From Lepidodermella squamata (lineage: Eukaryota; Animalia; Gastrotricha): a DNA stretch of 64,000 nucleotides. Positions within the stretch are counted from its first letter, which is position 1. Every line of letters starts with the position of its first letter. The notes under the pieces were generated by a model. The model worked only from the letters and a program-made list of their open reading frames with translations, had not been told where the DNA came from and did not search any database. Below are positions 24,038-46,124 of the stretch, piece after piece. Where the stretch lies: NCBI GenBank assembly GCA_047495785.1, contig JBLDXI010000013.1:744001-808000 (forward strand), given 5' to 3'. A program made the translations under genes and the position numbers.

Positions 24038-25429
24038 TCAGCCCAAGGCGGCGATAGGCTCATAACGGGAAAATTGGCGCATGGTCTGATCGATCCAAGG
24101 ACGCGCAATGCAAACCTGTTATTTTTAACACATCAAAACGTGTGAAAAAAATCGCAGTCTACAAGACAGAAAAAACACGCGCATATATACGTACATTGGA
24201 ATATGCGGAGTAAGAATCAGGCCGACCGCAGCTGGGTGGGTGCGAGCTGATGCCAGCAAGAACATACCGCCCGCTATCAACGCACATCAGTGGCGAGCCG
24301 ATATCATTCTATAAAGGACAAGGTTTGTTTTTCAAGAATTAATTATTAAAAGAAGAAAGTAATGAGCTTCTCATCAATTTCTTACGTTGCATAAATCAAT
24401 ACCGCCCTGAGGATAGCCAGCGCATATGTGATCTCGGCTAAAGTTGAACATTGCCAGATTGGCGGAGGCGAATGCCAAGTGGCAGTTTCTAGCCGAAACC
24501 AGCGGAACGTAGGCCTTGCGAAGGTAAAACGGCGCCTCCTCTTCGACGCCAGGTTGCGTTGAACCCCAACCGGCAATTTCCAATCTGCGCTGCTCTTCAT
24601 TCGTGCACGGCGATTCACAGGCAGAACTTGGCAAGCAAATCGGCTGAGCCACGTAATTGGAAAAATCAAAGGTAACTGTTCCAAAATAATGGTATTCATC
24701 AAGCCGGTTATTGTCAGCGAAATACCTGGAAGCTTCAACAAGCCGAAATTGTACGCATTTGTCGCTGAATTGAACATCGGATGAATGTGAACGTCAGAGT
24801 AGCTTATTGAGAATTTATTAGTCCTGTTTCCGTTGAATACTGATTCCACGGAAAGGGCAGTATTTTCTGCTACCGTGACCACTATATTGCCCTGGTAGGG
24901 GCCAGATTGGAGGCAAGATGCCGGCGTCAAGATCCATTGAGTGTCAATGATTGAACCTGTGCAAAAATACTTTCCCCTTGAACTAGAATCAAACAGAACC
25001 CGGACCATCCAAGGATATTCATCCTATATTACGAAGGATTATCAAAAATGAGGGACTTTGAGTCGCGGTTAATTACGATCTTAGCCAAATCGCCTCCCAC
25101 TAGGTTGCTGCGAAAAAACTGGGTGTTTCGATTACCAAGCGGAAGTCCAGGATTATAGTATTTCTAGTGCAAACAAGTTAAATTTTTTATATATTCTATC
25201 AGCAAAATCGATATCTAACGGTGTGGCCGCATTCAGGTTGAGTTGGATTCAACGCTGCTGGGGTATAGGCGACATTTTTTATATAGCTGACAGTCGGCTC
25301 TGTCTCTTGAACGTAAGCGACCGGTCGCGGGGTAGTAGCACCTGATTGCCAGCCGTTGAAAGACGAGCATGCTAGTGAACAAATCGGCCACGATATAAGC
25401 AACAGCCAATCAATGAGAAATCGAACCAT
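24038..25429 (-). CDS. SP1: S1A serine protease homologue, catalytically dead
   Basis: Spliced model. Signal peptide ending SLA|CSS; CGHTKYY; SN|LVGG; TPASC (His57 lost), YNFGLLKL (Asp102 to Asn), CNNDIGSPL (Ser195 to Ile). Confidence 0.85.
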
Positions 25430-25561
25430 GTCAAAAATTAAGAAGAAATCCTTGCGCACGTTTATTATAAAGGGAAATTGCCCAAGGCCTAGCAGTTTTT
25501 ATTTCACTTTGTCGGAATCAAAATAGCGGAGTAGAAATATTTTTAGGATTTATTGTCATAA

Positions 25562-27311
25562 TTAACCGGTCGAGCCAACAACAGCCCCGCTTATTTGCGT
25601 TATCCAGCTTGTGACTTGGCACACTTTTGAGTAAATGCCGGGATAGCCGTTTTTCCCACAGCCTGAAAAACAGCGACAATTATTACCGGTTGGAATTGTC
25701 CAGAAATTTTGTTCACTCACCATAACTGTAGGAAGCTATTCCACAGACTTTGTAATATCCGTTCTCCATCGACATCAATGGGCTTCCTTTATAAGTAAAA
25801 ATTGTTTAAAAAACGCCTTCAATTATGTTTTATCAGCTTTCATACCTAAATCACCAGCACAAATTCCGACTTTCGACAAAAAAGATCAAGAGTGAAATTA
25901 AAAAATCTCAGAGTTTTTAAGGCTATACCTCCACCGCCTGACTGACCGCTGCACATCATGTTGTCCTATTGTTGGCAAAATAAAAATTATGGATACATTA
26001 AGGATACGCCACCTACCGTTAAATAGATTAAACCACCCAATAAATAAGTTAGGCGGCACGTCGAAGCGTCGATTACTTGGATGTAAGCACGTTGAAGAAT
26101 GTTTGATGTCGTTGAATTCCCTACGAACCGAAATCAGAGCTACCCCCTTTTTTGTTAATTTTTGTTCACCTACCATCCCTATTAAAATATTAGTAATTTC
26201 TAGTCTTTTAACGAAATTGAAATTAAACTCACTGAGTTGATCCCCAGCCTGAGAAAGAATTTAAATACAAGAGAATTATGCCATGACAGAGAATACAAAT
26301 CTGAGTTGAGAGTTGACTTACCTGCTGTGTACACGTACGAATTGGCTGTACAGCCATCGGAACAGGAAGTCGGCAAACAGATCTTCTGTACCGTCCAATC
26401 AGAGACAAATGAAACATTGGCTGAATATTTACAATTCTAAAAATTGGGTTCGATTATTGGAAGAATGGGACTTACATTGCAGCTGGATAAGGGCGAAATC
26501 GTAGTCCTTGGTAGATGCTGAATTTAAAATGTTTATACTAAAGTATATTCCTTGCCAGCTTCAACAAAATTACCTGAATAGGAAGGATGGAAGACGATGC
26601 GGGACGAGGTTAGTGTGAATTCTCCCGTATCCTTAACCGAAGCGTCATGGTCAGCAAAATAAACGGTAACCGTTGTCCTATATTTCGAATGAAAATTTAT
26701 CAGAATTGAGCAACCATTTTCAAATAGGCTCACGTTGTGTTTTTTGCACTAGCTACACAGGTAGCTGCCGTTAAAATCCATCCGGTTTCAACGATGGCTC
26801 CAGCGCACAAGCCATAAGTGTTGTCAGAAAGCAGGACGAGAAGCCTGACCAGCCTGTAACACTAAATAGATTCCTGGAGTTCGGGGAAAAAGCGCAGCTT
26901 ACCAGGGGTACATATTTTGATCAGCACTGATGCCACCTTAAATGAAAATTGTCAAATTCGAAATCGAAAATCTTAAACTTGAATGTTCTTACCCACAATA
27001 CCACCGGGATTCTCTTGCGTGTTCTTGTAGTACTTGGAATGCCCACATTTCGCTGTTGCTACGGCGGGCGGGGCAGGTGTCACTGATGGAGTAATTATTT
27101 TAGTAAGATACGGAACAATTAAGGTGAATAAATGAATACCCGATTGCGCCGGTGTAACCCCCGATGACGCTGTAAATATGTACCAAAAAATTAGCAGATG
27201 TTGTGGTTAACTATAATAAAAATTACTTGGAGGAGCGACTACCGCGCAGGAATCGATGACCTCGATTTCATAGACCGCAATGGCAATAAGGCAAAACAGA
27301 AATAACTTCAT
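25562..27311 (-). CDS. SP2: S1A serine protease homologue, catalytically dead
   Basis: Multi-exon. IDS|CAV; CGHSKYY; PGG|IVGG; TAATC (His lost), DYDFALIQL, CAGDLGSPL (Ser195 to Leu). Confidence 0.85.
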
Positions 27312-27694
27312 TCTTTCTAAATTATATTACGATTCTGTAGCGTGAGAAGGTTTATTGTTTCCGAAGTTTCGATGACGGAAGTCTAGCATCTCAGTTGATC
27401 TTCTCTATATTTAAAACCGTAGACTTTGGTTACGTATTACGTGAGAACCATTTTTGTTGGCATTGTAGCTGTGAACAATAGCTTCTCGAACGTACTTTCT
27501 CGCGTGGGAATGGGTGTTTTATATAGCAACCAACTTATTTGTTTGCTTTATTTTCCCAACTTATGATTCATGCCATTTCATCATCATGCGAATGATTTTA
27601 TTTCATACCACATTTCCTCAAAGTATTGATATAAAATGAACATGATTGAATAGAAAAATAAACGTCAACTTGAGATACTCGGCAATCAAAATCA

Positions 27695-29062
27695 CTAATA
27701 CTTCGCGACAGCATCTGAAATCCATGAGATAACCTTACAAACACGGCTGAAATTAGACCAAGTTCATTGCGTGATTGATTGCAGCAGTTTTTAACAAACT
27801 TACGCGTAAACTCCGTAAAATCCAATCCTCGCGCAGCCCATACCAAATGAAGTCACTCCGCATAGCTTGTAGTAACCGTTTTCAGCTACAACCAACGGCC
27901 CACCTTGAAAAGGGTACTCTATAGCGAGGCCATAAATATATAAACAAAAATTACCTGAGTCACCGAGGCAAGTATCCACTCCGCCGTTAGGATAGCCCGC
28001 GCATATCATGCGATCTGTGATTTTCGACCCAGCCCCTGATAAGTAGTTGCTCGCACAAGTTGTTTGATCTATAATGTTAACATAGGCCTTCTGCTGGTAT
28101 CTAGAGGCTGAATTGCTTGCTAAAAGTACACCATGATAGAATCCTAAATTAAAATTCAGATTCCAGCTTTACATTCACTCGTTGTTCCCCAGCCACTGAT
28201 GTAAGCGATCGTCCCAGCTGCGCAACCGTCGTTGCAAGACGAAGGCAGACAAACAGCTTGTACGGCCCAGCTAGATGTCAACGAAACCGCACCTGTTACG
28301 GACTTTCATTATAGCCTTGCATAACTTGACAAACTTGAAAACTTACTTGCAAGCTTGAGTAAAGCAAAGTCGTAATCATTTGTGCTTGAGGAATACGATT
28401 CGTGGATTACAATCCTCAAAACTCCTAACGAGTATTCGCCGGTATCAGATGCCGATTTGTCCCAATCACCGAAAATCGCCGTAATGTAGCTTGCGTTAAA
28501 CGCTGCCCTAAAAATATTACGACAATTTGTAAAATGAATACGTATTAAATTTTAAAACTAACTTGGCACAATGCGCTGCAGTTAGAAGCCAGCTGAAACA
28601 TAGAAAAACTCGATAGTTTTGATATTCATGATCTAAAACTAGTCGGCAAACTTGGCATTAATCAAAGTCGCCCCGCAAAGATCGCTGGTCCCATCTCCGA
28701 GGCTTATCTTTAGTCGAACGAGCCAGGGGTATTCATTCGGGGCCGCTGTTATGCCTCCAACAATTCCCGATGCGGCTTGACCTGGGTTCGAATTTGAGCT
28801 TGAATAATAGTACTTATTATGACCGCACGTGTTTGACGTTGTAGCTGCCTGGAATAAAGGTATATATATCGAAATTTTCGATTGATTTTAAATTTACAGG
28901 AACGCTTGGTAGCTGACTTTGAGGCGGGGAGTCACCTCCGGGTGTTTTGCTGAATGGCGAACTTGTTGACGACGACGAAGCTGTTATGCATGCCAGCAAT
29001 ATCTGCAGCTGCGATTCAGTCGCCAACAGGAAGACCAGCAACAACTTTTTAACAGCCAACAT
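27695..29062 (-). CDS. SP3: trypsin-like serine protease, intact triad
   Basis: LLA|CIT; ASG|IVGG; [27 protein letters not shown] (Asp189). Confidence 0.92.
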
Positions 29063-29601
29063 ACAAGCTATACGTATGCAAGTTTAAAACAGTGTTTCGC
29101 GTTATGGTTAAGGATCACTATACGCGGCAGCCTACAGAGGATTTTGTGTACTAGTATAAGCAAACAGTATGAAGCGTGGGCAGCGACGACAAAAAATGGA
29201 TTTTTGAACACGCCGGTACATGAGATCGGCTGTCTTGTTAAGGTGGTATCATCCGTTGACAGTTATAGGCCATGTTTGTCTTTTTCTCAGCGCCACTAAG
29301 GAATATAACGCTGTGCTAAGTTAGCGAGTGTTGAAAAAACCTCACCACCGCCCCACACTTCGTGCACATTATTTCGCGTATATCGACGACGGTCTGTGGT
29401 GTGGTGTATAACTACGTTACGCTTACCAGTGTAATTGATTGTGCGTTCAGGAACATTTTTTTCAACAGTCGTGTTCCTGCGTAGGTATTCCTATGAAAAC
29501 ATGCCTATTTTGGCCTTGAAAGTCTCCTCTCACGTTCCATTTTTAGTAATAGGTAAATTTCATTTTCAGTTATTGACATTGAACAATCGAGAATCACTGT
29601 T

Positions 29602-30752
29602 CTATACGGCATTAGTTTTTATCCAACTAGATACTGAACAAATTCTTGAGTAAACGCCAGGATAGTTAGATCTAGCGCAGCCGTTGCCGAAACTCACAAT
29701 GCCGCATAATTGGTAGTAACCATTGACAGCAGTCATAAGTGGCCCGCCTGAATCACCTTGGCACGTGTCTACACCGCCACTTTTCCAACCTTGGTGGGAA
29801 CAAATTGAATCTCGAAATTCGGTGAAATTCAAACTATTATACCTGCGCACATCATTCGATCGGTTATTTTCTCGCCAACAATAGCATAGCTATTCGCACA
29901 GGTAGCGGTATCCATTAGGTAGACACTGGCGTGTTGCATTACATAGGGCTCCAAGCTGTCGCCCTCTGCAACTAATCCCCACCCTGCGATGTAGGCAACC
30001 GAGCCAGCGTTGCACCCATCGGAGCAGTCAGCGGGTAGACAAATCTTTTGCGTGGTCCAACTTGTAAAATTTAATGGACCTGTTTGAATGAATTTGGGAC
30101 AAAAATAATTAGGGAGTATAAAAATCACTCTCTAATTTTAGCAGCGCGAAGTCATAGTCGGAGGTATCAGAGTTATAGTTTTCGTGAATAACGATTTTTG
30201 ATACTTTCTTCGTGTACTGCCCTGCATCGTCTGCATTTCGATTGTAATCAGCCATAGTTGCTGTTACTGAACTAAAATTTCGCAAGATTTGATTGCAGAG
30301 CTTCAAGATGCAACTCACATGACCTGCCTGAAATAAGGGTTATGCGTCCATAATTATGAAATCAAGAAGGAATTTTACTTGACGCAATGTGCCGCTGTAA
30401 TCAACCATGATTCGCTAATTATTGACGAACCACAGGAGGCAATACCAGTTGAAAATGTCAGGGTCAGTCTTGCGAGCCTAAGGAATTCGGAATTAAGCCC
30501 AAAATTAAGCTTTCAGCGTGCAAACCAAGGATATTGATTGGTTAAGGTGTCCTCCCCACCTACAACGCCAGTCCCAGGATTATTGGTCAAGTAGTAATAT
30601 TTGGTATGGCCGCATTGACTCCCGAGGGCTGGGGGTAAGGCTGGCATGGCTATGGAGCCGGCTTTTCGAGTCTCTGGAACACTTTTACTACAACTACGAG
30701 CATATCGGCACAACAATGCCAGCAAGAAAACCGATACTAAGATTGTTCGCAT
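29602..30752 (-). CDS. SP4: trypsin-like serine protease, intact triad, 6 exons
   Basis: Exons 30526-30752, 30379-30477, 30319-30327, 30129-30271, 29853-30079, 29602-29789. ARS|CSK; GTG|VVGG; [27 protein letters not shown]. Confidence 0.93.
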
Positions 30753-31093
30753 TTCAGCTGATTGATCGGTGCTTGTTGCAAAAGAAGGCTGTTAAGGCGA
30801 TATGTGTTCATGAATTACAAAAGTTAATATACGCCTTCTTACTACAACTACGACACGAAATTTACGTAACGTGAAACAGCTTATAGCGCCAAATTATTGC
30901 CATTTTATTAAGTATTCATCCATTTTTTGCATACAATAATTCTTGTAGTTTTTCACACAACGTGTGCTGTCGAACGTGCTAGTTCAAAACATGGCGCAGA
31001 AGCAGTGTAAAGACAGATTTATAGCGTGGAAGACCGGAAAACGTGATTTTCCACCACGTGGAAATTAGGCGAATTTCATTGGCACGACACCTT

Positions 31094-32291
31094 TCAAGAT
31101 GTTGCTGAAGTTGATTTTATCCAGTCTAGCACGGAGCAAACTCTGCCATACACCCCCGGGAAGTGATACTTGGCACAGCCGAAGCCAAAGCTGGTAACGC
31201 CACACAGCGTTGCGAAGCCACTGGTCATCGTTACCAGCGGCCCACCTGAATCTCCTGAGCAAGCGTCTACGCCGCCATTGTTCCAACCTTAGTTGGAAAA
31301 TTAGATTCAAGAACTTGAAATTCGATAGCGACTAACCTGCGCATAGCATTCGATCAGTTATTTGTTGACCTACTGGGCCATAAGACTTGGAGCAATCGAA
31401 CGTATCCCGCAAGTAAACGTAGGTGTGCTGTAGCATCTGTGGCGATACTGTGCCTCCGGCCTGGACAACGCCCCAACCTGCTATGTATGCAACTGAACCT
31501 GCGCTGCACCCGGTTGAGCAGTCTGGCGGCAAACAAACTTTCTGGATTTTCCAGTCAGAGAAATTCAAGGAATCTTGTTGATAAAGAGAAATCCATGTTT
31601 TCAAATGTTTTTCGAAAATATGTTATACTTGAAAACTTGATTAGAGCAAAATCATAGTCTGAGGTTGCCAAGTTGAAGCTTGGATGAACAATAATTTTGG
31701 AAATATTAAGGTTGATTTCTGTGCCTTCGATTTGCAATCGATCGTGATCGCCAGCAATTGCTGAAACAGAGCTTTTTTGATCAGAGTTCATCCAGGAATA
31801 TCTTGCTGAAAGCTGAATGCTTACTTTGCATCCCTAGTTCAAGAAAAACCATTTTATATTAACTTTTATTGAACATTTGCGGTAAAACCTACTGAACGCA
31901 ATGAGCAGCAGTTATAAGCCATGAATCACTTATGATTGACGCTCCGCAAGTGCTTTGTCCCGCGGCATACGATAATTCGAGCCTTACAATCCTATAATTC
32001 CAAAAAAGTCATAGGTACCTAGATAAACGCATTAGGTTACCATGGATATTGATTTGGTAGAGCGTTCTCGCCGCCTATGATACCAACTCCTGGCTTGTTA
32101 CTCGAGTAGTAATACTTACTGTGCCCGCATGTCGAGGCAATAGCTGGAGGAAGGGCGGGCATGGCGATGCTGCCGGCTTGCCTTGTAACAGGCAAAGTCG
32201 ACGAGCATGCTAGGACTTTAAAAATTTCAGCCAAGGCGAGCACCAGCTCTATAGCAGTTGGGTACAACAGCTTTCTCTTTAGAACATTCAT
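31094..32291 (-). CDS. SP5: trypsin-like serine protease, intact triad
   Basis: VLA|CSS; GVG|IIGG; [27 protein letters not shown]. Shares [12 protein letters not shown] with SP4, suggesting a closer duplicate pair. Start codon choice inferred. Confidence 0.9.
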
Positions 32292-32388
32292 CACAATAAA
32301 AACATGTTCGCCGTGAACTGAAGCAACCTCAGTGTGAAGGAGTGGGAAAATGCTCAACATAAACATTTTTATTTCCGAAAACGTCGTA

Positions 32389-33608
32389 TTAAAAAGTGTT
32401 GCTTTTGATCCAGTCTACCACAGCACAAACACGTGAATATACGCCAGGATAGCCAGCTCGGGCACAGCCTACGCCGAAACTCACGACGCCGCAAATTTTG
32501 TAGAACCCATCTTCGACGACCATGAGAGGTCCGCCTGAATCTCCTGAGCATGTATCCTGGCCGCCGGCAGCTACGCCTAAAATAAGACATTGAAAAAGCA
32601 ATAAATTGGATTTACTTTCAAAAACCTGCACAAGTCATCCTATCCGTGATGGTCGACACAGAATAAGCGGCCCTGCAAACAGCTTGGCTGTAAATGTTTA
32701 CTATATTTGACTGCATTATTTTCGGTAAAACGGAGGATTCATTCAACAGGCCCCAACCGGCAATGTAAGCGTACTGACCTGAAACGGAAAGAATGATGAT
32801 TCCGTTCCACATTACAATTAACTAACCCGCTCCGCAGCCATCAGAGCAAGAACTTGGCAAACAAATTTTTTGGGCGCTCCAACTGCTGAAACTTAAAGCG
32901 GCTGTTAAAAAGAAAAAACGCGATGCCCAAGATTGACAATGTTGAGCTTCATCATACCGTCTAGCCTAAGTAGAGCAAAGTCGTAATCTTGCGTGCTCGA
33001 GTTGTAGGAGGTATGCTTGACTATGACAGACACTTTTCGAGTATATTCACCGGCATCAGTAGCCGTCTGGTCGTAGTCGGCGATGTAAACTGTAATTCCT
33101 CTTCAATTTTTTTATCCGATGACTGAGCTTGGAAGTCGAGAAAAACTTACGAGGCAAGCATTCCACTTTAAAAATGATGATTTTTACGAATTAATACAGA
33201 TTAATTATGACTTACTTGATGCAATGAGCTGCGGTTAGGACCCAGTATTCACCAATAATACTTCCCCCACATAAGCTCGTTGAAGATCCCGACGAAATTG
33301 AAAGACGAACCAGCCTAATTTTCAGAAAGTTAGGACGATGCGAAAGTTGTCCGAGAGTTTCACTCAAACCAAGGGTATTGATTAGGCCTAGCATTTTCTC
33401 CACCAACTATTCCATAACCAGGTAAATCTGCCGCAAAGTAATACCTGGTATGGCCACAATTGGAAACTATAGCTTGAGGCGGTGTCGGTGTTGATATGCT
33501 GCCGCTTATTCTAGTCAGAGATGACGAGGATGTACACGCCCAGTTTCTGTCGAAAAACACCGCTAGTATCAGTGTTAATTTCAACAGAAACCTTGATAGT
33601 AGATGCAT
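32389..33608 (-). CDS. SP6: trypsin-like serine protease, intact triad
   Basis: NWA|CTS; GYG|IVGG; [27 protein letters not shown]. Confidence 0.92.
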
Positions 33609-33973
33609 TTATAGAATGATTCCGATGTTCATTCTAAAACTATAAAGTACAGCTTTAATTACGCCTTACACGTAGGAAAAAGCCAGCGTGTTCTACAGTT
33701 TCGTAAAACTATAGCAACAAGACGCAGCTTTTTGTGAAGGGATTTTAATACAGCATTACAGTGTTAAAGGTGTAAAAAATGTACATCAAAAGGTGGCACA
33801 TTATACCTGTATAATATGTTCGCCTGTACTCAAAATCCTGCCCTCGTTGGCTGCGTCAAATAGAGACATAAAATTAAACGAATTGGGAACAATTTTAACC
33901 ATAAAAACTTTATTTTCTCATTAAAAACTGATTGATCACGCAAAATTGGTGCTTCTATGATCATCTATATAAT

Positions 33974-35452
33974 TTAAAGACCAGTCGTGCTCTTGATCCA
34001 CTCTCTGACTGTGCAAACTCTCGACTGGGAAATGCAACAACAAAAGTCAACTTTTCAGCAGAAATTTAAATAGCTTACGTATACGCCGTAGTAGCTCGAA
34101 CGACCACAACCAGAGCCGTAACTCGTAACTCCGCAAAGCTTGTAGTACCCATCTTGGACGACCATTAAAGGTCCACCGGAGTCACCTTGACAAGTGTCGT
34201 AGCCACCTCCCAGCGTTCCTATTTGCCGAAATGAGTTATAATTCTGTGATTATTTCGATATTTTTGGACTCACCAGCGCAGGTCTGGCGATCCGTGAATG
34301 AAGATCCATATTGAGACACGCATATGTCCCGAGGTACTATTTGCACCCAGGTTTGCTGTAGCCACCTGCTTCCTGATTTCGCAGTTTCAGCCGTTAAACC
34401 CCAACCGGCTATTTCAGCGTAAGTATATTGGCCACAGCCATCGTCGCAGGATGACGGCAAACATATCTTCTGGGTTAACCAATCGCTGGAAAAATCCAAT
34501 TTCGCTATAACATGTCATTTTTGATAGAAAAAGCTATTTAAACAATGAAAATATTGGATTACTTGATGTTTTTAAGAGGGTAAAATCGTAATCTTGACGC
34601 GTTTGATCGTAATTCGGATGAATTGTGAACGCTGACATTTTAACGGTATATTCGCCAGAATCTGTTGTAGTTTGATCCCAGTCCCCGAATACTCCGGTAA
34701 TCGAGCTATTTGTTAGGAATTATTAATTTAATTATAAAAGGTTCCATCCAATTGTTACCCAGCATCTGTGACGCCTCTGTTAAAAATGGTTTCCTTTAAG
34801 TTATGTTTTATCAATATCGCAAATAAACTCACTGCATGCAGTGCGCTGCTGTCAGCAAGTAGCTTTAAGATAAAAAAGATGAATAAAAGTGAAAACATGG
34901 CTTGGTTAACTTACTTTTCGCTAATGATTGTCGCTCCGCAAAGGTAGAGAGTAGAGCCGACTGTTATTTTCAGCCTAACCAGCCTAAAAAAATATTGTAA
35001 AATTCTCTACTTTGATGTTCCATGCTGGCTGAAACCAACCATGGATATCTGAAAATTTGATATTTTCAAACATATAATGACTGCAATTTTAAAGATGATT
35101 TTTACTGATTTTGTGTTGCATTTTTTCCACCAACTACGCCAGCTGAACCGGGCTTGTTGTAGGCGTAATAGTTCTTGCTATGGCCGCAGCTAGAATTTTG
35201 AGGCTTTATCGTTGTCAATGTCGCGTTTCTGTCAACAGCAGGCATTGTTGCGAGAACTTTCGTCGTAGTTGACTGGCCAGGGGCTGTTGTTGCTGTTGGC
35301 GATGAGCCTTGTGAGGGCGACGACCCAGCTGGGCTTGCAGGCGGCTTGTTATTATCGTCAACGCCTCTCGAAAAGCATGCATTAACCGAGGGCAGTGACA
35401 CCAGGACAAGTCCAATCAATAAAGCGCTGCATTTTTGGGGTATCATAACCAT
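33974..35452 (-). CDS. SP7: trypsin-like serine protease, intact triad
   Basis: VNA|CFS; S/T/P-rich stalk; SAG|VVGG; [26 protein letters not shown]. Confidence 0.9.
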
Positions 35453-35867
35453 CAATATAAATTGGATTTTAAAAGTTTCACAGGAGAGAGATATTTCTGC
35501 TATTTCTTGATCCTGTTCTTCGTGCTTGCGTTATTTGCTTATCAGAAAAAACTCGCTGAAAGTGAAACGTAAAATATTTTACGTTATAGTTACCCATGTG
35601 GGAAATGAAAAAATGTTTAACACCCTACTTAATTTAATGGAAGAAACGTCACGACAAACGTGCGTGCGTAAAAAAAGCGGAATTTCATCCCGCTTATATT
35701 GACATGTATGAATTGGATGTCTGAAGTCCAAAGTTCTAGAGTTCTAGCAAGCTGGTATACCTTGGTAAAATTTTAGTGGCAAAGTAAAGCTGCACCGATT
35801 TTAACGCAATTCATCTTCATCAACGTCAATCAGCGACGACAATTTTTCAGGAGCCAGCGTTGAAATA

Positions 35868-36674
35868 CCGTCATTCGGGGCTATCGCGGGATACGGGGCT
35901 ATTCGGTAAAAAGTTTGTTCAATTAGTAGATTGAGGTTTACTCCAAAACTATAAAGTCAAAGTCGACAAGTTTTTGCAGGGAGCTACCTCGATAGATGAC
36001 ACTTATTCTATCAAAAGTATGAGTTCAAAGAGTAAACGGTTCTGAAGCTGCAGGCTCACCTTTCAGGTGTAAGTTTAACTCAAGAAAACCCATGTGTTGC
36101 ATTGAATTACCTGGACCGGAATAGATCAGGCTCTGGACCAAATGAGCTGGGTTGTTGTTATGTTTCTCGGTAAATTACCCAGACTTTGAATTTAAGATGC
36201 TTGATAAACTTGTAATTAAGCTTTAAGCTTTATCGGGGAAAGGCTGATATTGCATTTGGCAATGACTATTAAAAATTAATTGATTTACTGCGAATTAAGG
36301 AAAAACTGTCTAATTAAAAGCCAACTATTTGCATGGCATAAGTTTGTTTGCATAAAAACGGCGGTTATTTTGCTGTAGAAAAAAATAATTTAGGCGAAAA
36401 AAGCTAAAAAACGAACCCTTGTGGAATCGAACCGCTGACCTTTTAATGATCTCGCCATAGACAACTGTGATAAAAAACCTTCCTTGCTTATTTACTAATA
36501 TTAAGATGTCTATATATGTGTAAATAATAGCCCCACACCTGTCCGAATAGCCCCATCCGTGGGGCTATTCGGAATACGGGTGCCATTCGAATCAGGACCC
36601 TTGGAAACGTGTAAAAAAAGCGAAAAAACCAGGGGGTCATTTTTTGACGCATACCAAATAGCCCCAAATGACGG
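35868..36674. mobile_element. Non-autonomous DNA transposon (MITE), Tc1/mariner-pogo/Tc2-type ends, 807 bp
   Basis: Terminal inverted repeats CCGTCATT(C/T)GGGGCTAT starting at 35868 and ending at 36674, flanked by TA on both sides (35866-35867, 36675-36676). Internal copies of GGGGCTATTCGG in both orientations. No transposase ORF. Confidence 0.8.
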
Positions 36675-36876
36675 TAAGTTTTACTGGTGAAAATATGTAA
36701 CAATGATTTTTCAGAACTTTACACGAGGTAGAGATGTGGTATTTCGGGCATAAAATAGGCATAGCGAATCATAGAGCGTAGAGCAAGTTAAGAATGGTTC
36801 AGACCCCGAACTCATGTCTCGTATTAGATTTATAAAAGCTTCTGGAGGTACGCTAATGAGCTGACGTTGAGGTATT

Positions 36877-38561
36877 TTACGCGACTGGTGCATTAAAATT
36901 GATCCAATCGATGACGGAGCAGACCTGTTAAATTGGAGAATACATCAGGCCATTGGCGATCAGTGGACATTTCAATGGTTTCATACCCGCGAGTAAACTC
37001 CGTAATAACCTGCGCGTCCGCAACCGTTGCCAAAGCTGGTAACGCCGCAAATTTTGTAGAATCCATCTTCGACGGTCATCAGGGGACCTCCGGCATCTCC
37101 AGTGCAAGTGTCAACACCTAAAGTTAATAACTGTCAATAGCTGATATCTAAAACGTTTCATCGCTACTTACCACCGCCGCTGTAGCCTAAAATGAGAAGT
37201 GAACAAATTTTGAACAACTTTTCAACAGAAATAATGAGCTCATTCTTACCTGCGCAGATCATACGATCGCTGATTTGAGAAAGCGAAGATGCATACTGTT
37301 TAGTACAGTCATCTTTATCAGCGATCTTGACGTAAGCTGTCTGCATGAATTGCACAGCAGTAGAGTTGGCTGGGAACGAAAAAAAAAAGATTATAGCGTA
37401 GGGATGGCTGGGGTGAATAAGTACCCTCGGAAGTTGCTCCCCAGCCCGCAATGTATGCGATTTTGCTGACGCCACATGATGCGGCGCAAGTCACTGCTGT
37501 TGGCAGGCAGATTGCCTGCACCTTCCAAGAAGAGCCGGTATCAGTTAGCACGAGAGCCGCTATCAAAAACTCAGCATTAATAACTGCTATTTTCAATGTA
37601 ACGCGACATACTTGACAAAGTGAGAATAGCGAAATCGTAGTCGTTGTTGATGGCACTGAATCAATGTATCTCAATTATTGATGGCAAACAGAAGTTATTA
37701 ACCAACTTGTAGCTTGGATGGACGAGGATAGACGCGATGGCGACTTGATATTCCCCACTGTCAGTATTAGCTGAGTCCCAGTCAGCGAAAATGGCAGTAA
37801 TATCACTTGAACGTCAAACACATTATAGCTCTCGCGCAGGTTGAATAATAAAGTTATTACGTGATGGAATTGGCATATCTGAATTAAAATTAGATGGGTG
37901 ATTATAGCAATGCAGCGATTTAAAATATGTAAGAAAACCTACTTGGCGCATCTTGCTGACGTTAGAAGAAATCTATTATGATCATTAATGCCAACTGATT
38001 AATATGAGATGAAGCTGAAGTTGTTATGCTTACCGTTTTTGGATGATAGAGGCGGAGCAAGTTCGAATAATCGTCCCATTGAGAATTCTCAGACGAACAA
38101 TCCTGTTTATTATTCTCATGTTGCTTGGAACGCGAAGCGTAACTGCATCTTACTTACCAAGGGTACCTGTTTTATTTAGACGAATGAAACGATCTAGGTT
38201 AATAAATACGTTTATAGCGACTTACTGGTTCGGCAAAGCGGTAGTACCGCCGACAATCGTCGCTGATCCCGGATTGTTACCGCCGTTGTAATAAACTGTG
38301 TTCCCACAAGCCTGTTTTACAGCGGTTGGTGAAGCTGGCGTTAGCAGCTGATTAGGAGGTTTGGAAGTAGTAGTAGTAGTGGTTGTAGTTGTGGTCGTTC
38401 TATAAAAAATCCATCTATAATAGTTCTCGGAAAGCTAGTTAGGGAAAATTTTACGTCCTCACTGTCGTTGTCGTGCTGGGAGGGTCCGGCTGGCAAGAGC
38501 GAGCCATTTGAGCGAAAAGGCCCAAACCCAGAATCAGTAAAGCCACCCGATTATTCGTCAT
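36877..38561 (-). CDS. SP8: S1A serine protease homologue, catalytically dead, ~13 exons
   Basis: ARS|CQP; Thr-rich stalk; SAT|IVGG; TSARC (His57 to Arg), [20 protein letters not shown] (Ser195 to Ala). Confidence 0.87.
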
Positions 38562-39102
38562 CACCTTAGATAATTATATACCTAAAATTGAAACAGTTTT
38601 AACTTTGAAAATTAAGAAATTGAAAATAACGAGAATAAAAGCTGTTGATGAACACGAGTGGCCATCGTGGGTATCGAGCTGTTGTTTTGCGGCAAGCGCA
38701 CAGCGATGAGCTACACAAACACTGTAAGCAAAGCTTTCGAACCGCCGATGACCATATAATAATTAGCCGTTAGTGCAGGTGAATCCGAGTAAAACTTTGT
38801 TTTCGTCAAATTTTTCACGCGATATAACGTCTATTGTTGACAAACTTAATGCCTTAATTACATTCAAACCAAAATCCTATGCGCTCTAGAGAGCCGGCTT
38901 AATCGCAAAAGATATAGACTTACTAAGCTAATGAGTCTTAATCAACAAGCGAATCTTTAATTTTTATTGCTTCAAGGTATGAAAATTGATAAGATCAAAG
39001 TTCGGTCTTCAACTCGAGTAGGGGTAAACAGACGCCGAGATAATGGTGATGAGTAGAAAGTGACTTGAACTTGATACTCGGTGTCTTAAGCAATTAAACG
39101 CG

Positions 39103-40655
39103 TCATCGCCATCCATCGGCCTCTAAGACACTTTTTATCCATGGCAACATTGAGCATATCTGTAACAGGCAAGTTAATCAAGTGCAACGAAGGCTATCAA
39201 ACTAAATACCCTAGTGTAGACTCCGAATACTCCTAAAGGGGAAACAAAATTCACAAGCACTCATCGCGAGATGAAGAAAGTTTTAGGGATAACAAACCTG
39301 CTTTTCCTATAAAAAATAGCAAATATTAATAGAACTTAGAAATATAGGTATTTCCTTACCGCATCCATCGCCGAAAGATGTCACGCCACACAAGTGGAAA
39401 TAGCCATTTTCCGCTGTCATCAATGGGCCGCCTTAAAACCAAATGCTCTATAATGCCAATTTAAAAAATGACTCATGCTTCTCTCACCTGAGTCGCCAAA
39501 ACAAGTGTCAATGCCTCCATTATTCTCGCCAGCACATATCTATTAGAAGACCCTATCAACATCGAGTCGAAAACAGAGCAAACAAACCATGTTGTCCGTA
39601 ATTTGCTGGGCCAAAGGTTCGAACGCCTTGCGGCAATAATCGCGCGCGGTTATTGGCACATAGGCTTTCTGTAGTAGTTTCGACGCTTTCAGCTCGTCAC
39701 TGCTCCTCGCGCCCCAGCCAGCTATGGTGGCGACTCCTCGATCACCGCAACCGTCATTGCACGACGAAGGTAAACAAATCGGCTGCACCGAAGACAAAGA
39801 ATCTTCATCGTCCAGTTGTTTCAGCAAGTTTTCTATTGCGGAAAGGAAAGTTTCAATCGGAAGGAGATTAACTTATTCGGCTCAAACTTTCAACAACAAG
39901 AATAGCGATATCGAATTCATTTGTGGCGGACGAGTAATTCGGGTGCAGCAGGATGCTCACAACAGGAACGACCCACTTGTAATAACCAGCCTTGACCTTT
40001 TCCCCGAGGTCATGCTCGCCAACGACTGCTAACACATTGCTATTAGAGGATAAAAAAGTTAGGATTTTTCCAACATATCAGATGCAAGTTCGAAGTACTT
40101 TGGCGACGCTAAGACATCGATGACACAATGGGCTGCTGTAATCATGTGCTTTTCGGAAAGAATGTTGGCGCTGCAAAGCTGAGTTAGATTGGTAGCAGGA
40201 TGGGTGATTTGGAGCCGAACCTTTCAAGCAAAAAATGTCAGAAATTCTCTTGTATTGACGAACTATGCTGTCAGTATTACAAGCCAAGGAAATTCGTTGG
40301 GAAGAGCTGTTACCCCTCCGACGATGGATGATGGCTCGTTGTCCCCAGAATGACGGTAGTATCGGCTGTGGCCACATTTCGAAGCTTTAACCGGTGCTAT
40401 GCCATTGTTTTTTCTTTGATTCAGGTCTTCTCGCTCCACGTTTGATAACGGGTTTCTCCCCAAGGGCGGTCGATGCTTGTTTTTGTAAGGATCGCCGTAA
40501 GGTCTCTTAAAGTTTCCGAAGCCCTGGCTGCATGCCATAGCTGTCTCTACGGCAATCGCGGAGATAAGGAGCACAATTAGCCCACATCGGGTACATCCAT
40601 TTCCCCGTGCGCTCTGCTTTTTTACCGCAAAACTGTTTATCAAATTAATCAACAT
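39103..40655 (-). CDS. SP9: trypsin-like serine protease, intact triad
   Basis: AMA|CSQ; basic stalk; CGHSRYY; PSS|IVGG; TAAHC, FDIAILV, GIDTCFGDSGGPL; 9-nt micro-exon at 39298-39306. Confidence 0.88.
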
Positions 40656-41017
40656 CAGCTACAATTTAGTATACTACAAAAAGTTGCTTTCTTTGTGTTT
40701 CACTTAACCCTGCTCATGATGCACACGGGAAGTTTTATTGTTTATTCGCAAAAAACGACTCGCTGTTTGTTGTGCTCGTCACTATATATGCTATACGACA
40801 TGCGACGTGTGAGAGCTTCCTTTCGTACCGATGGCCGGCACTCGAGGAAATTAAGCTATAAGCACCAACTCATGAATGACGACAATCCAGCTGCAGTTCA
40901 CGCAAAAACAAAGATAATGCTATAGGTATACGCAATCCTCGCCAAGCTCTTTCTTTGAGCTTTTCGAAATAGTTTCATCAGTGCATACAGATGAATGACA
41001 GTTTGAGGCGGTCGCCT

Positions 41018-42667
41018 CTAGGTTTGAATATTTCTCCTGATGAAATTCACGAGCACTTCATTCGCGTTCTGCCCGCATAGCGGAGTGAATGTGCTGTAAA
41101 ACTGAGATCTTGGGCAATTCTGAGAAGAAAAATGATTAAAATGAAGTCTTGAGGTGAAATTCCCATCTCCTTTACCTGAGCAAAAAGTGTGATGGCAACT
41201 AGCTCGTAACTTCCATCACTCCTTAGACAAACTAGGGGGCTGAAATTACAGAAAATATTAGCGCTTGGATTCGATTCGGACACTGATACCTTCCTGTGTC
41301 ACCTTGGCAAAGCGGAGTTTTGGTCGTTCCGGCGCACATCATGGTATCAGCCACCTTTTGAAAGGCTATTTCGTTGATTCTATTCGGGCTCGGCGGGGTC
41401 GCTTTACACGTTTCCAAATCAATAGGTGTTTGCTCGATCTGAAAAGAAAAAAAAACATATATCAGCCGATAATTTTAGTGGAAAACGCAGCTGCACCTTT
41501 TGCAAATTCTGCTTAGGCTGGGATGCATCGGAGTCTGCAATTTGAAATTTTTTGCCTCCTTCTACATGGATTTAATGCTATTTTACCAAGAGATCGACCC
41601 CATCCAGAGACAAATAGCCTCGCTGTAGTGTTAAGGTTGTTGTAACAGCTATTTCACAAGTTTAAATTATAGATGAATTAAAAACACCGAAGCCAACCTG
41701 GACGAACAGCTCTCCGGAAGACAAATTGGCTGCAGCCTCCAATCTGTGAAGCCGCCGACTATCGGATCTGAAATCGAAAGTTAAAAACAATCATGGTCGA
41801 GACCTAAAATATCCCTCTCACTTCTCATTCTTAACATTGCGATATCGTACAGGTAGGTTGAAGGAACGTATTGAGGATGAAGCAGGATATCTGTCGATAC
41901 AATATCAGTAGTTCGAAATGCTTCACCTCCATCTCGTTTGCTCAATCCTAGATAGGCTGTCATCGTAGCTCTAATTAGCAATCAATAGCATGAAGCCTAC
42001 ATGTAAAATTCAAAAAATCTACCCGGGTACGTTTTTCACTTTGTTGGCACATGATGCTGTTGTAACAATCCATCCTTAGTAAAACAAATAGGTTCAAATG
42101 GACTTTCGAATTTGATATTAAACTTACGGTCACTAACCACAATTCCAGAACATTCTTGGGTATCAAGAGTCTGGGTGTTGGTAATCGATAGTAGAACCTG
42201 TTAGAAATAAGGCTTAATTTCCCGAGCGAAGTTGGTCGAACTAAGAAATCCTTACATGCCAAGGGAACTCTCGATCAGCTGCATCATTTGAGATCTATAA
42301 ATTTGAAGAACAAATTGAACATTGATAATCTAAAATGCATATAGACAAACGGGATCTGGGAGTCCACCGCTGTAGTAGATATTTTGTCCACAAAATCGAC
42401 CGGGTAAGATGGTGGGGCCGAATGTGGATGTTGTTCCAGAGGTTTGAAAGGCGCCTCCGAATCTTTAATTTGTTAAAAATATATTAATAAAGGTAACGAA
42501 TTACGAATTTAGCATTACGATTGGCCTTGTGACAGGTCGTAGTTATCATAGTCATCAGCATCACGAAACATCTCCCATTCGGGAGGCTGGCGACTCGGCG
42601 GAACACAGGCTAACTGAATTTGAAGTTGCCATGCCAAAGCTAATGTCAACACGATGACGATTTTCAT
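41018..42667 (-). CDS. SP10: divergent S1A serine protease homologue, catalytically dead
   Basis: QLA|CVPPSRQPPEW; CGQNIYY; no IVGG; TTASC (His lost), YDIAMLRM, CQGDTGSPLVC (Ser195 to Thr). Confidence 0.82.
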
Positions 42668-42971
42668 TTTTCGCAATGGAAAATGGAAAATATTAGGAAG
42701 AAGCCAAGGCCCTTTACAAGAGCGTATTTCAAGACATAACGTCGTCGCGGTGTTAGAGCGGTAAATTCCACGGCTTCACTAACTAGCCGCTGTTTTACAA
42801 TTTTTTCCCGAAACAGTGCGATTCAGAATTACAGGTGTTAAATTTGAAACAAATTTTTATTACTCAGAACGTGTTTTATTACGCGATTGTGTGAAGATGT
42901 GTCAGGCGTCCTCCGAGCAAACATTATCAGTATCAGTTTTTTTCTGGCGCCAAAATACAAATAGAAACATG

Positions 42972-44469
42972 TTAGATGTTACGTGCTCGTTGAATTGTAC
43001 TTTGTATCCAGGACAATACACCGGAGTTACAAACCCTGCTAAACAAACCAACACGATGATTCATTGGCGATTTCGCACAGCTCTGTTTGGCGGTTATGAA
43101 TTAAATAAAAAATTCATAAATTTTAATTTATTTACCTTCTCAAAAAGCTTCGGTACTGCTAAGCCGACTAGTTCGTGTCTGGCCTTGGTTAGACAGGTCA
43201 AAGGAGCTCCACTGTAAAAAAATACCAAGAAAATGCCGATCATCGATGTAAAAACGTTATGATTTTACCTAAACGTGGAACATAAACTCGGCATGTCATC
43301 GAGATCATTATTTTTCGAATTCAGATCCACCCCAGCGCAGAGATGGGATGAGCAGTCGTCAGATATTGAATAGCAAGATTCGGCCGGAAAAATTCTCAAA
43401 TTCCTCTTAATGGGAAATTCATAAACGTGAGTATGATACAGTAATCGATCGCTAAAATTCTTTACAATTTGAAGAATCTCGCTTGATCTGCCGTGGCCCA
43501 CTTGTCTGTAGTACCCAGATAATAGAGTTGCCCCGGATTCATCTATGCAGCTTCAAACAGCATTTCCCAAAACATTCGTTTAAAAGAATTTACCTATGCG
43601 TGCAGTTCTCGGGCAAGCAGACCGGCTGAACTCGCCAGTCTTCTGTAAAGTCTAATTTTGCTATAAAAGAAATTTAGAAATTTAGTATCGTAGGTATAGT
43701 CTGGACCTTTTTTCATAAAAAATTACAGCTCATTTTAAGCAATGCGAAATCGCCATTGTTTTCGAGGTGGAGCTCAATTTGCGAGATTTTTCGATACAGC
43801 TGATTTGACATTACTTTGCGGTCGAATTCGCCCAGGATTATGGTTACAGCGCTATTGATAGTTGATCATAAATTCATTCTGGATACAATCGAAACGAAAA
43901 ATACTTCAAATTCCCGTTAGCGAGGTTTGCACATGTTGCTGTAGTGAGGATCCACTGACTGTAAAGCAAACCCGTAGGTACATTGTTTTGGGGCAAGAAA
44001 AATGTACTTACTCATTGATGACAGCTCCAGCACATTCCTCATTCTGAGGATAATCTTGAATGAGGACCGTCGCATGCCACGGGGCTTGACCTTCGAGAGC
44101 ATCTGGGTATGGCTGGTGGCTGGTTCCGACCTTGTAGTACTGGTTAATTCCACACCCGGATCCGGGGACAAACCGCGGAAAGTAGGGGGTTATCAAAAGT
44201 GGAGTTGTTTGTCGGGTAGTTGATGTCTTCGAAGAAAACCTGCCACTTGCGAGCAAGCTATTCAATATTTCCAACGTGAAACATCACAAGTCTTCACTTA
44301 TATAAACCTACAATTCCTGAGATAAATTAGCCCTTATCTGGCCATCAGGGTCTGCTGTATCATCGATATCGTCGACAAATAGCTGCCACGGGGAAGGCTG
44401 TCTTGCCGGTGATAAGCAGCCATCGCAAGTTAAAGTGAATGCAATCAGCAAAAATATAAAAGGTGACAT
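42972..44469 (-). CDS. SP11: divergent S1A serine protease homologue, catalytically dead
   Basis: CDG|CLSPARQPSPW; CGINQYY; no IVGG; TTATC (His lost), GDFALLKM, CSTFSGAPLTC (Gly193/Asp194 lost). Confidence 0.8.
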
Positions 44470-44680
44470 GATAGTTTACAAGTTGATAAATATCTCATAC
44501 ACACTCTCAAAACGCGCGAATTTAATTGTTTTCGGATGTTCGGATTAATTAATTTTTATTATAAAAAAATATCGTCCCGCAACAAACAGCAAAAAAACAT
44601 GTTTTCACCTTGAATTTCTTTGTAATAAATTCGTAATGACTGAATATTTGTAGTCATGGGTCATCGGGATTTTTTGACGA

Positions 44681-46124
44681 TCAAACAGCTGTTGCTTTGA
44701 TCCAGTTAACAAATGAGCAAACCTGGAGCAAAAAAACATAAGAAAAAATGAGATTGACTCCTTGACATGGGATAACTTACCCTCGTGTAAACCCCATAAT
44801 AGCGAGCAAGGCCGCATCCCTGAGGAAAAGAAGTTTTTCAAACTCCCGGATGTATGGAATTTTGTGTTTCACCTGTCCGAAAGAAGTCACGCCACCGAGC
44901 TCGTAGAATCCTTTTGTATTACAAACCAGAGGTCCGCCAGAATCACCCTAGTTAGTTGAAAGGGAAAGGTGCTTTTGGCTTGCATCACTACCTTCTCTAT
45001 ATATTACCCTGCACGAGTCGACCTTGCCTTCCTCGAAGCCAGCGCAAATCATTCTTACAGTTGAATGAAGAATTTATGGTGGATTATAATTATTATAGAT
45101 GCGTTTGAAATATACCTATCACTGATCTGAGTGTTTACGTAGCTATAGCTGTTGGCGCATTGAGTATTCGTCACAATGGGGACCCAAGCTTTTTGGAGTA
45201 TGTTTGCCCCGTTGGAAGCGCCTGTAAATAGCCTAGAGATACAGGGAACCAAAAAAACGTTTCACTTACTGTTTGAAGTGGTGCCCCACCCTGAAATCCA
45301 AGCTACAAAAAGAGAGGGAGAATACCAGGCTGAAAGCTGAAAGCTGATTTTCGATTTTAAAATTACCAGGAGCGCCGCTTTGACAAGCACTAGCGGAGCA
45401 TGAATCCGGCAGGCAGATCGGCTGAATTGCGCCAGTGTAAGACACTCGACCTTATTTTTTCGGAAATCAACAATGCTACCTGAAATTTAGTAACCATCAG
45501 TCCTACTTGATGCCTGAATCAAGGCTATGTCGTAATCGTTAGGATTCGGACCGGATGCATTGTAATACGGGTAGACAACTATCTGTGACGCGCTCACGGT
45601 ATTTTCAGTCGAATCCACCACGCTTCTGTCGTGATCACCGTAGACAATAACAACGGATCTATATCGCAATAAATTAGTTAAATAAAATCAAAGGGATAGT
45701 TAATTGTGCTACACAGACCCAGATCCGCCGGCCGCAGATTTGGCACAATGCGCTGCTGTAACAATCTAAAAATGCATTAATTATGGAACTCGAATCGGGA
45801 GAAATCGGGATGAATAACCCATCGATTGTTAACAACGGCACCTCCGCACAGGTATGTTTCCGAACCGCTGACAATTCTCAGCCGAACTTGCCACGGGAAT
45901 TCGTTCCTCTTGGCGTCTACACCTCCAACAATGCTGGAAATCTCGCCAGTGTTGTAGTAAATTGAATGGCCACATGTAGAAACACTTGGCGACGGAGCGG
46001 CTGGAACATTACTCGACTGGGACGACGGTACTGATGGGCTTGAAGATGAACTACTTGTACTGCAAGCTATCGAAAGATCGAAAAATGTCAAAGTTGCCAC
46101 GAAAAGGACAAAAATTTGCCGCAT
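44681..46124 (-). CDS. SP12: trypsin-like serine protease, intact triad
   Basis: SIA|CST; Ser/Pro stalk; CGHSIYY; ISS|IVGG; [28 protein letters not shown]. Confidence 0.92.

Follow-up and report, generated by a model that had tools for sequence, protein, structure and literature searches.

Known trypsin-type zymogens differ in how they are switched on, and they form the background for the locus reported here, a tandem array of S1A (trypsin-fold) protease genes from the gastrotrich Lepidodermella squamata, found in a stretch of 64,000 nucleotides (contig JBLDXI010000013.1 of assembly GCA_047495785.1, positions 744,001 to 808,000 of the forward strand; below, this stretch is called the window and positions are counted from its first letter). 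The closest solved sequences and folds are those of the type II transmembrane serine proteases (TTSPs) matriptase, enteropeptidase and TMPRSS2. In TTSPs and in chymotrypsinogen the residue directly before the activation bond (P1) is Arg or Lys, many of the enzymes activate themselves, and a pro-region Cys about 12–16 residues before the bond, together with Cys122, keeps the domain tethered. Other arrangements are also known: Streptomyces griseus trypsin combines Asp189 with a non-basic P1, Limulus factor C is a zymogen of trypsin specificity that cleaves itself at a Phe-Ile bond on lipopolysaccharide, and insect modular serine proteases show a non-canonical self-activation like that of factor C. 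Tryptase uses an Arg at P3 for its first autocatalytic cut, which leaves a removable dipeptide. KLK4 prefers Arg at P1 of its substrates, its own propeptide ends in Gln, and MMP20, thermolysin and dipeptidyl peptidase I (DPPI) activate it in vitro (PMC4082239). β-Tryptase is matured by an autocatalytic cut and then DPPI, or by cathepsins L and B (PMC7957558), and granzymes are activated by DPPI (PMC10707025).

The gastrotrich array resembles each of these systems only in part. KLK4, an Arg-specific S1A protease with a non-basic propeptide end, is the exact functional precedent and embodies the same logic as the non-tryptic activator proposed below; however, KLK4 is one gene of vertebrates and its propeptide is short, whereas the array is a tandem family in which P1 is mostly Gly and the pro-region is long, stalked and probably tethered by a Cys, and the two are not orthologous, being at most about 35% identical. 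β-Tryptase is likewise an Asp189 enzyme with Gly directly before IVGG and with non-tryptic maturation, but P3 in the array is Gly, Ser, Ala, Pro or Ile and the segment before the bond contains Pro. Some granzymes (A and K) are tryptic in specificity and are fired by a cysteine exopeptidase rather than by a trypsin-like enzyme, although their propeptide is a dipeptide right after the signal peptide, while the pro-region of the array copies is 42–80 residues long. With TTSPs and chymotrypsinogen the array shares the spacing of the pro-region Cys and the presence of Cys122, but where TTSPs have an N-terminal membrane anchor and stem domains, the array copies have a signal peptide that is predicted to be cleaved, followed by an N-terminal Cys and a stalk of low complexity. 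Secreted bacterial trypsins of the Bdellovibrio type also carry Asp189 with a non-basic P1, but they have no Cys-tethered propeptide and no C-G-H-x-x-Y-Y motif, are 38–43% identical and form a separate cluster in the tree. Factor C differs as a large mosaic pattern-recognition protease, and nothing comparable is present in the array. Judged by its sequence, the array family is an S1A member that is KLK4-like in logic but falls outside the kallikreins, the tryptases and the TTSPs.

Non-basic P1 residues and trypsin-type pockets

The array consists of ten genes and two degenerate remnants, arranged head-to-tail on the minus strand between 24.2 and 46.1 kb of the window. It was found by a six-frame scan for protease motifs, by tblastn with a hand-built model and by spliced protein-to-genome alignments; a custom spliced aligner that reproduced the hand model exactly was then run on every copy, and the results were corrected by RNA and by eye. 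The genes are named by window position (g25, g27, g28, g30, g32, g33, g35, g38, g40 and g46), and the models of g27, g35, g38, g40 and g46 were made from alignment and splice consensus only. PF00089 (Trypsin) matched exons of g30 with E values of 5e-16 and 2e-09 and is carried by the relatives as well; exon 1 gave zero Pfam matches.

Arg or Lys stands at P1 in none of the ten genes (0/10). An earlier note on this DNA had read the residues before (I/V/L)(V/I)GG, from g25 to g46, as Asn, six times Gly, Thr, Ser and Ser, and this series was exactly reproduced; the codons are listed in Table 1. Seven of the ten copies (g28, g30, g32, g33, g35, g40 and g46) keep His57, Asp102, Asp194 and Ser195, and all of them start with (I/V)(V/I)GG and contain G-D-S-G-G, while the catalytic triad is lost in g25, g27 and g38. 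The note had also claimed Asp189 for every active copy, which was borne out in 7/7, and Gly216 and Gly226 are present in all seven too. The active copies are therefore predicted, from these pocket residues, to have a canonical trypsin-type S1 pocket that accepts Arg and Lys. Because the ten copies are paralogues, the non-basic P1 has to be counted as one inherited trait and not as ten independent events.

The non-basic P1 of the array goes beyond chance when it is set against the retrieved domains outside the family that have Asp189 and Ser195. P1 was Arg or Lys in 104 of these 161 domains, and in the other 57 it was non-basic (Asn, Leu, Glu, Phe, Met or Thr); most of the 57 are single-domain proteins of about 260 amino acids, and several are named by their sources as Bdellovibrio-type bacterial serine proteases. 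Animal multi-domain matches with a C-G...R↓IVGG segment (the arrow marks the activation bond) were almost all basic at P1. Asp189 together with a non-basic P1 is thus unusual among animal proteases of the tethered type and common in nature overall.

Transcript evidence for the activation site

The contigs of run X1, which is RNA-derived, skip predicted introns whose ends read CT..AC on the plus strand and hence GT..AG on the gene strand. Their junctions confirm all seven introns of g28, six introns of g33 and parts of g30 and g32 (for g32, the joint 31573/31629). In g30, the RNA has extra letters at the joint 30271/30378 and a loose end at exon 1–exon 2; another loose end, at the 3' side of this gene, resembles what we take to be a cDNA-synthesis adaptor.

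The region that matters most is covered directly, since the RNA is unbroken over the pro-region Cys, P1 and IVGG in g28 (28727–28847) and g33 (33369–33558). Moreover, the start codon and IVGG share a single open reading frame (ORF) in g30, g33, g35, g40 and g46, and in P0001, the orthologue of g28 on metagenome contig L001, the signal peptide, propeptide, Gly↓IVGG, His57 and Asp102 all lie in one uninterrupted ORF. Among the findings that would speak against its reading, the earlier note had named transcripts with an unrecognised exon that supplies Arg or Lys before IVGG; we looked for such an exon in the RNA contigs and the orthologue and found none, and the RNA contigs together with the intron-poor P0001 exclude it.

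Anatomy of the pro-region

Full-length copies begin with a hydrophobic, signal-like stretch and have a Cys directly after the predicted cleavage site, as judged by eye. A stretch rich in Ser, Thr and Pro, 20–60 residues long, then precedes the conserved segment C-G-H-(S/T)-x-Y-Y ... (N)-P-G-x-G. The Cys of this segment lies 14–21 residues before P1, with a mode of 16, and an equivalent of Cys122 is present in every copy, where the Cys of an ICLP motif aligns with Cys122 of matriptase. The segment Cys most likely pairs with Cys122, so that the propeptide would be tethered as in chymotrypsinogen and TTSPs. The suggestion of the earlier note that CGH(S/T)xYY is a docking site for the activator found no support; the spacing of the Cys and the Cys122 in every copy fit a propeptide tether more simply.

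The Cys counts are consistent with such a tether. Relatives in which the N-terminal Cys is missing have 12 Cys; in P0063, which lacks the N-terminal part, these would form six pairs: 42-58, 168-182, 191-220, 128-232, one extra pair and the pair of pro-region Cys and Cys122. Each of the seven active window proteins has 13, an odd number, which probably leaves the N-terminal Cys without a partner; it may carry a lipid or be cross-linked. A Cys after the signal site, seen for example in the first exon of g30 (30680–30752), is also present in P0001, P0013, P0014, P0019, P0043 and P0050. Signal-anchor and stem domains (SEA, LDLa, SRCR, CUB) were not found in the window copies, whose N-termini look by eye like cleavable signal peptides.

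The fold was assessed on a relative, P0062:112-376. Its AlphaFold2 model has a pLDDT (predicted local distance difference test) of 89 overall, which falls below 50 for the residues just before IVGG and is about 60 in the C-G-H part. The model shows the two-barrel trypsin fold, with a template modelling (TM) score of about 0.9 and 34–37% identity to matriptase, enteropeptidase, trypsin and TMPRSS2.

Relatives and the history of P1

An exhaustive HMMER search, with an RNA-verified exon that covers the propeptide and the first part of the domain as the query, found the C-G-H-x-x-Y-Y propeptide only in proteins from ENA metagenome assemblies. Five more family members came from a word search that started from one metagenome relative; a word search with P0001 at an overly strict threshold of 1e-25 returned the query alone, and a scan of JGI metagenomes with an N-terminal profile gave only unrelated R↓IIGG proteases. 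Beyond the C-G-H-x-x-Y-Y relatives the best matches were generic trypsins with at most 46% identity, and a tryptase-like match with ...G↓IVGG, P0029, was also in the search. We consider it fairly probable that the family forms a clade of secreted S1A serine-protease zymogens which is confined to one lineage. A literature search on gastrotrich serine proteases, and on IVGG zymogens with a non-basic site, found nothing relevant.

The non-basic P1 extends to most of the relatives. P1 is Gly in P0001, P0008, P0019, P0030, P0050, P0062, P0064, P0078 and P0092, Ser in P0014 and P0021, Gln in P0043, and Asn or Gly in P0013 and P0054, both of which fall in one 90%-identity cluster. It is also kept in orthologue pairs (Gly in g28/P0001, Ser in g40/P0014), and contig L001 contains a tandem of three orthologues, of which one is dead and two are active, with Asp189 and with Asn or Gly at P1. 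This conservation across relatives and orthologues indicates that the non-basic trait is old and shared, though not absolute. Indeed, the statement of the earlier note that P1 is never Arg or Lys is true of the window array and does not hold for the family: P1 is Arg in P0063 and Lys in P0065, so tryptic activation is not closed to every member. In a rapid maximum-likelihood tree with a midpoint root, these two proteins are sisters (Shimodaira–Hasegawa-like approximate likelihood ratio test, SH-aLRT, 89) and are nested in a starred clade (96) of members with Gly or Gln at P1, and the basic-P1 outgroups are placed elsewhere; their basic P1 is likely a reversal.

Some relatives showed further variations. 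In P0008 and P0062 the sequence is stop-free from the last exon of one protease domain, via a Thr-rich linker, into a C-G-H segment and a second complete domain, and each is either a polyserase-like protein with two domains or a gene call that reads through. P0092 and P0050 form a sister subfamily with C-G-(V/L)-N-K-Y-N-N ... G-A-G before (I/V)VGG and with Gly at P1, and one relative, P0092, has an SRCR domain.

A proposed activation mechanism

In the mechanism that we propose, the protein would consist, in order, of a signal peptide, a Cys, a Ser/Thr/Pro-rich stalk, the activation segment and a catalytic domain starting with I/V-V-G-G. Activation would follow the classical route, in which the chain is cut exactly before Ile/Val16 and the new N-terminus inserts against Asp194; because Asp194 and the I/V-V-G-G N-terminus are kept, exact cleavage at this position should be needed. 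The pro-region would stay attached after cleavage via Cys122, as in chymotrypsin and TTSPs. With a trypsin-type pocket on one side and Gly, Ser, Thr or Asn at P1 on the other, neither self-firing nor cross-firing is expected at the activation bond, and the enzymes should be unable to activate themselves or each other there. The wording of the earlier note, that the family cannot activate itself, is too firm; Limulus factor C, likewise of trypsin specificity, cleaves itself at a Phe-Ile bond. Activation would then depend on an endoprotease of a different specificity.

Such an activator would be guided mainly by the hydrophobic residue after the bond (P1') and would be tolerant of a small P1; most likely it would be a metalloprotease of the MMP, astacin or thermolysin-like kind. 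An enzyme driven by P1' is favoured because P1 may be Gly, Ser, Thr, Asn or Gln, with Asn and Gly even within one 90% cluster, and because P2 varies as well (Thr, Val, Tyr, Ala, Ser, Gly, Ile). A metalloprotease is preferred over a papain-type cathepsin, since the latter wants a hydrophobic P2, and over DPPI, which should be blocked by the long Pro-containing segment; by analogy with MMP20 and thermolysin as activators of KLK4, we regard a metalloprotease as a reasonable guess for the activator class. Taken together, it is rather probable that the array encodes trypsin-type zymogens which undergo classical cleavage by a non-tryptic, most likely metalloprotease, activator. The signal cleavage site, the tether, the substrate specificity and both the need for an activator and its class are all predictions from sequence. 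The physiological role would probably be digestive or surface proteolysis.

Several points weigh against this proposal. A single nucleotide change would turn nine of the ten P1 codons of the array into a codon for Arg or Lys (the exception is the TCC Ser of g40), and basic P1 residues do occur in two of the about 16 relatives, so the constraint is not absolute. The specificity of the enzymes was read from three pocket residues alone (Asp189, Gly216 and Gly226). As for the activator, Pro is found at P4 more often than at P3, the position preferred by MMPs, and the residues on the P' side are set by the fold and hence are uninformative about which enzyme cuts.

We also looked for the activator near the array. 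An active paralogue with a small-residue pocket, which could fire the others, is not present within it, as the pocket is that of a trypsin in 7/7 active copies. The ten largest flanking ORFs of the window, to which this look was limited, match IMD, Sushi, sodium:solute symporter, ABC transporter or nothing, and no metalloprotease or cysteine protease was found among them.

If the mechanism is true, the making of trypsin-type enzymes would be uncoupled from their firing, with the switch placed under a protease of another class, and a large tandem family would be guarded against runaway self-activation. Nature would then offer a non-vertebrate case in which the KLK4/tryptase principle applies across a whole family, and this in a phylum in which proteolysis has yet to be studied. 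P0063 and P0065, the two basic-P1 members, offer a natural test of how easily such a switch rewires, and for annotators it means that "trypsin-like" genes here should not be assumed to form self-activating cascades. Two things are new, a family marked by this propeptide motif and Gly or Ser fixed at P1 across it; the principle of a non-tryptic activator is already established, and a specialist would not be greatly surprised.

Alternative explanations

Of the alternatives, which are taken here in falling order of probability, non-canonical self-activation comes first. Latent activity of the zymogen would cut its own or a neighbour's Gly/Ser-Ile bond when the protein is concentrated or bound to a surface or ligand. 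The conserved features of the pro-region (the post-signal Cys, the stalk, and the His and Tyr-Tyr by the tether Cys) could mediate clustering, and the activation loop is predicted to be flexible in the P0062 model; however, an Asp189 pocket gains nothing from a P1 Gly, and no recognition domains (CCP, LDLa, clip) are present. We regard this route as unlikely.

A more elaborate form of the proposed mechanism seems improbable, too. The array would be a trypsin-insulated set with a dedicated convertase that recognises C-G-H-x-x-Y-Y ... P-G-x-G↓IVGG, and the enzymes would be anchored by the tether disulfide, a glycosylated stalk and the unpaired N-terminal Cys, the last through N-palmitoylation of the Hedgehog type or a disulfide to a surface or mucus partner. 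The relatives with Arg or Lys at P1 would then be the entry points to a second tier of a private two-tier cascade.

Multi-step trimming would begin with a cut elsewhere, for example after the Lys or Arg of C-G-H-S-K/R, and exopeptidases would then work back to Ile16. A Lys or Arg does occupy motif position five in six of nine window copies, and there are precedents in β-tryptase, with its autocatalytic cut followed by DPPI (PMC7957558), and in the activation of KLK4 by DPPI in vitro (PMC4082239). On the other hand, g46, g38 and several relatives lack the basic residue, its distance from P1 is 10–16 residues (most often 11), and P3 is never basic in the window copies, unlike in tryptase. The conserved Pro-Gly between this residue and the bond should also block DPPI. 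Trimming of the DPPI/tryptase kind was counted out by the non-basic P3, the Pro in the segment and the long pro-region, and multi-step trimming as a whole has in our view only a slim chance.

It is very unlikely that the basic P1 was simply lost because classical activation had become irrelevant, through single-chain activity, non-catalytic roles or decay. Three of the ten copies are catalytically dead and two degenerate remnants lie among them, as would suit such drift, but seven copies still have an intact triad together with Asp194 and an N-terminus of the IVGG type, transcription and splicing are seen in RNA, the same features are conserved in divergent relatives, and P1 is confined to small polar residues instead of being random. 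Finally, an artefact of the gene models, in which an unrecognised exon or splice site puts Arg or Lys before IVGG, is hardly conceivable: the very many short introns and the 9–15-nt micro-exons do make such models error-prone, but they are answered by the unbroken RNA of g28 and g33, by the five genes with one ORF from start codon to IVGG and by P0001, whose single ORF runs from Met past Asp102.

Gene structures, neighbours and other observations

Table 1. Protease genes, remnants and flanking genes in the window, with the P1 codon of each array gene (positions are those of the window)
Feature	Position	Strand	P1 codon	Remarks
g25 (SP1)	24159..25136	-	25104-25106 AAC Asn	dead, divergent; P1 before LVGG
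g27 (SP2)	25562..27116	-	27000-27002 GGT Gly	dead: His57Thr, Ser195Leu, Gly189; 13 exons modelled
g28 (SP3)	27695..29062	-	28765-28767 GGA Gly	active; 8 exons, 7/7 introns in RNA; Asp189
g30 (SP4)	29602..30752	-	30567-30569 GGC Gly	active; 6 exons including 9-nt micro-exon 30319-30327; P1 before VVGG; Asp189
g32 (SP5)	31094..32366	-	32082-32084 GGT Gly	active; micro-exon 31825-31833; P1 before IIGG; Asp189
g33 (SP6)	32389..33608	-	33411-33413 GGA Gly	active; 7 exons including 15-nt micro-exon 33151-33165; Asp189
g35 (SP7)	33974..35455	-	35138-35140 GGC Gly	active; P1 before VVGG; Asp189
g38 (SP8)	36877..38546	-	38258-38260 ACG Thr	dead: His57Arg, Ser195Ala; propeptide motif retained
g40 (SP9)	39103..40655	-	40326-40328 TCC Ser	active; 9 exons including 9-nt micro-exon 39298-39306; Asp189
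g42	41328..42194	-		degenerate protease copy; regions of His57 and Ser195 missing or changed
N-terminal remnant	44008..44274	-		degenerate; CG-x-N-Q-Y-Y motif kept, no IVGG (ORF translation)
g46 (SP12)	44681..46124	-	45933-45935 AGC Ser	active; 10 exons modelled; P1 before IVGG; Asp189
Large ORF ending in Sushi/CCP repeat	46818-49277	-		directly upstream of the protease array
Sodium:solute symporter gene	56560-57798	-		one of two in tandem
Sodium:solute symporter gene	59994-60812	-		the other of two in tandem
ABC transporter half	61387-63138	-

The coordinates of all features are given in Table 1. Both degenerate remnants sit between g40 and g46, and g42 is a probable pseudogene. In the model of g27 the IVGG codons are interrupted by an intron. 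The micro-exons of 9–15 nt in g30, g32, g33 and g40 lie just past the His57 exon. Extra letters at RNA joints back the ones in g30 and g33, and alignment-based models overlook such exons.

The genes are rich in short introns. Altogether 74 introns of 47–77 nt (median 55) were counted, with 3 to 12 in each array paralogue. The number differs greatly between orthologues: g28 has seven introns, confirmed by RNA, versus one in its orthologue at L001:10031-10982, and the model of g27 has 12 versus two in its orthologue at L001:11465-12415. The idea that the introns are recent repeated elements was rejected, as the 74 have no sequence similarity to each other.

At the 5' end of the g28 transcript (29063–29069), an RNA contig has 25 non-genomic letters upstream of a 7-nt 5' untranslated region, beside an AG. 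This 25-mer is absent from the whole window and may stem from a trans-spliced leader, from a 5' exon farther away or from a chimeric contig. DNA contigs of another run, X2 (2024), differ from the window at 27660–33650 by several per cent, with small insertions and deletions concentrated in introns, and likely represent a second haplotype, a strain or a close species.

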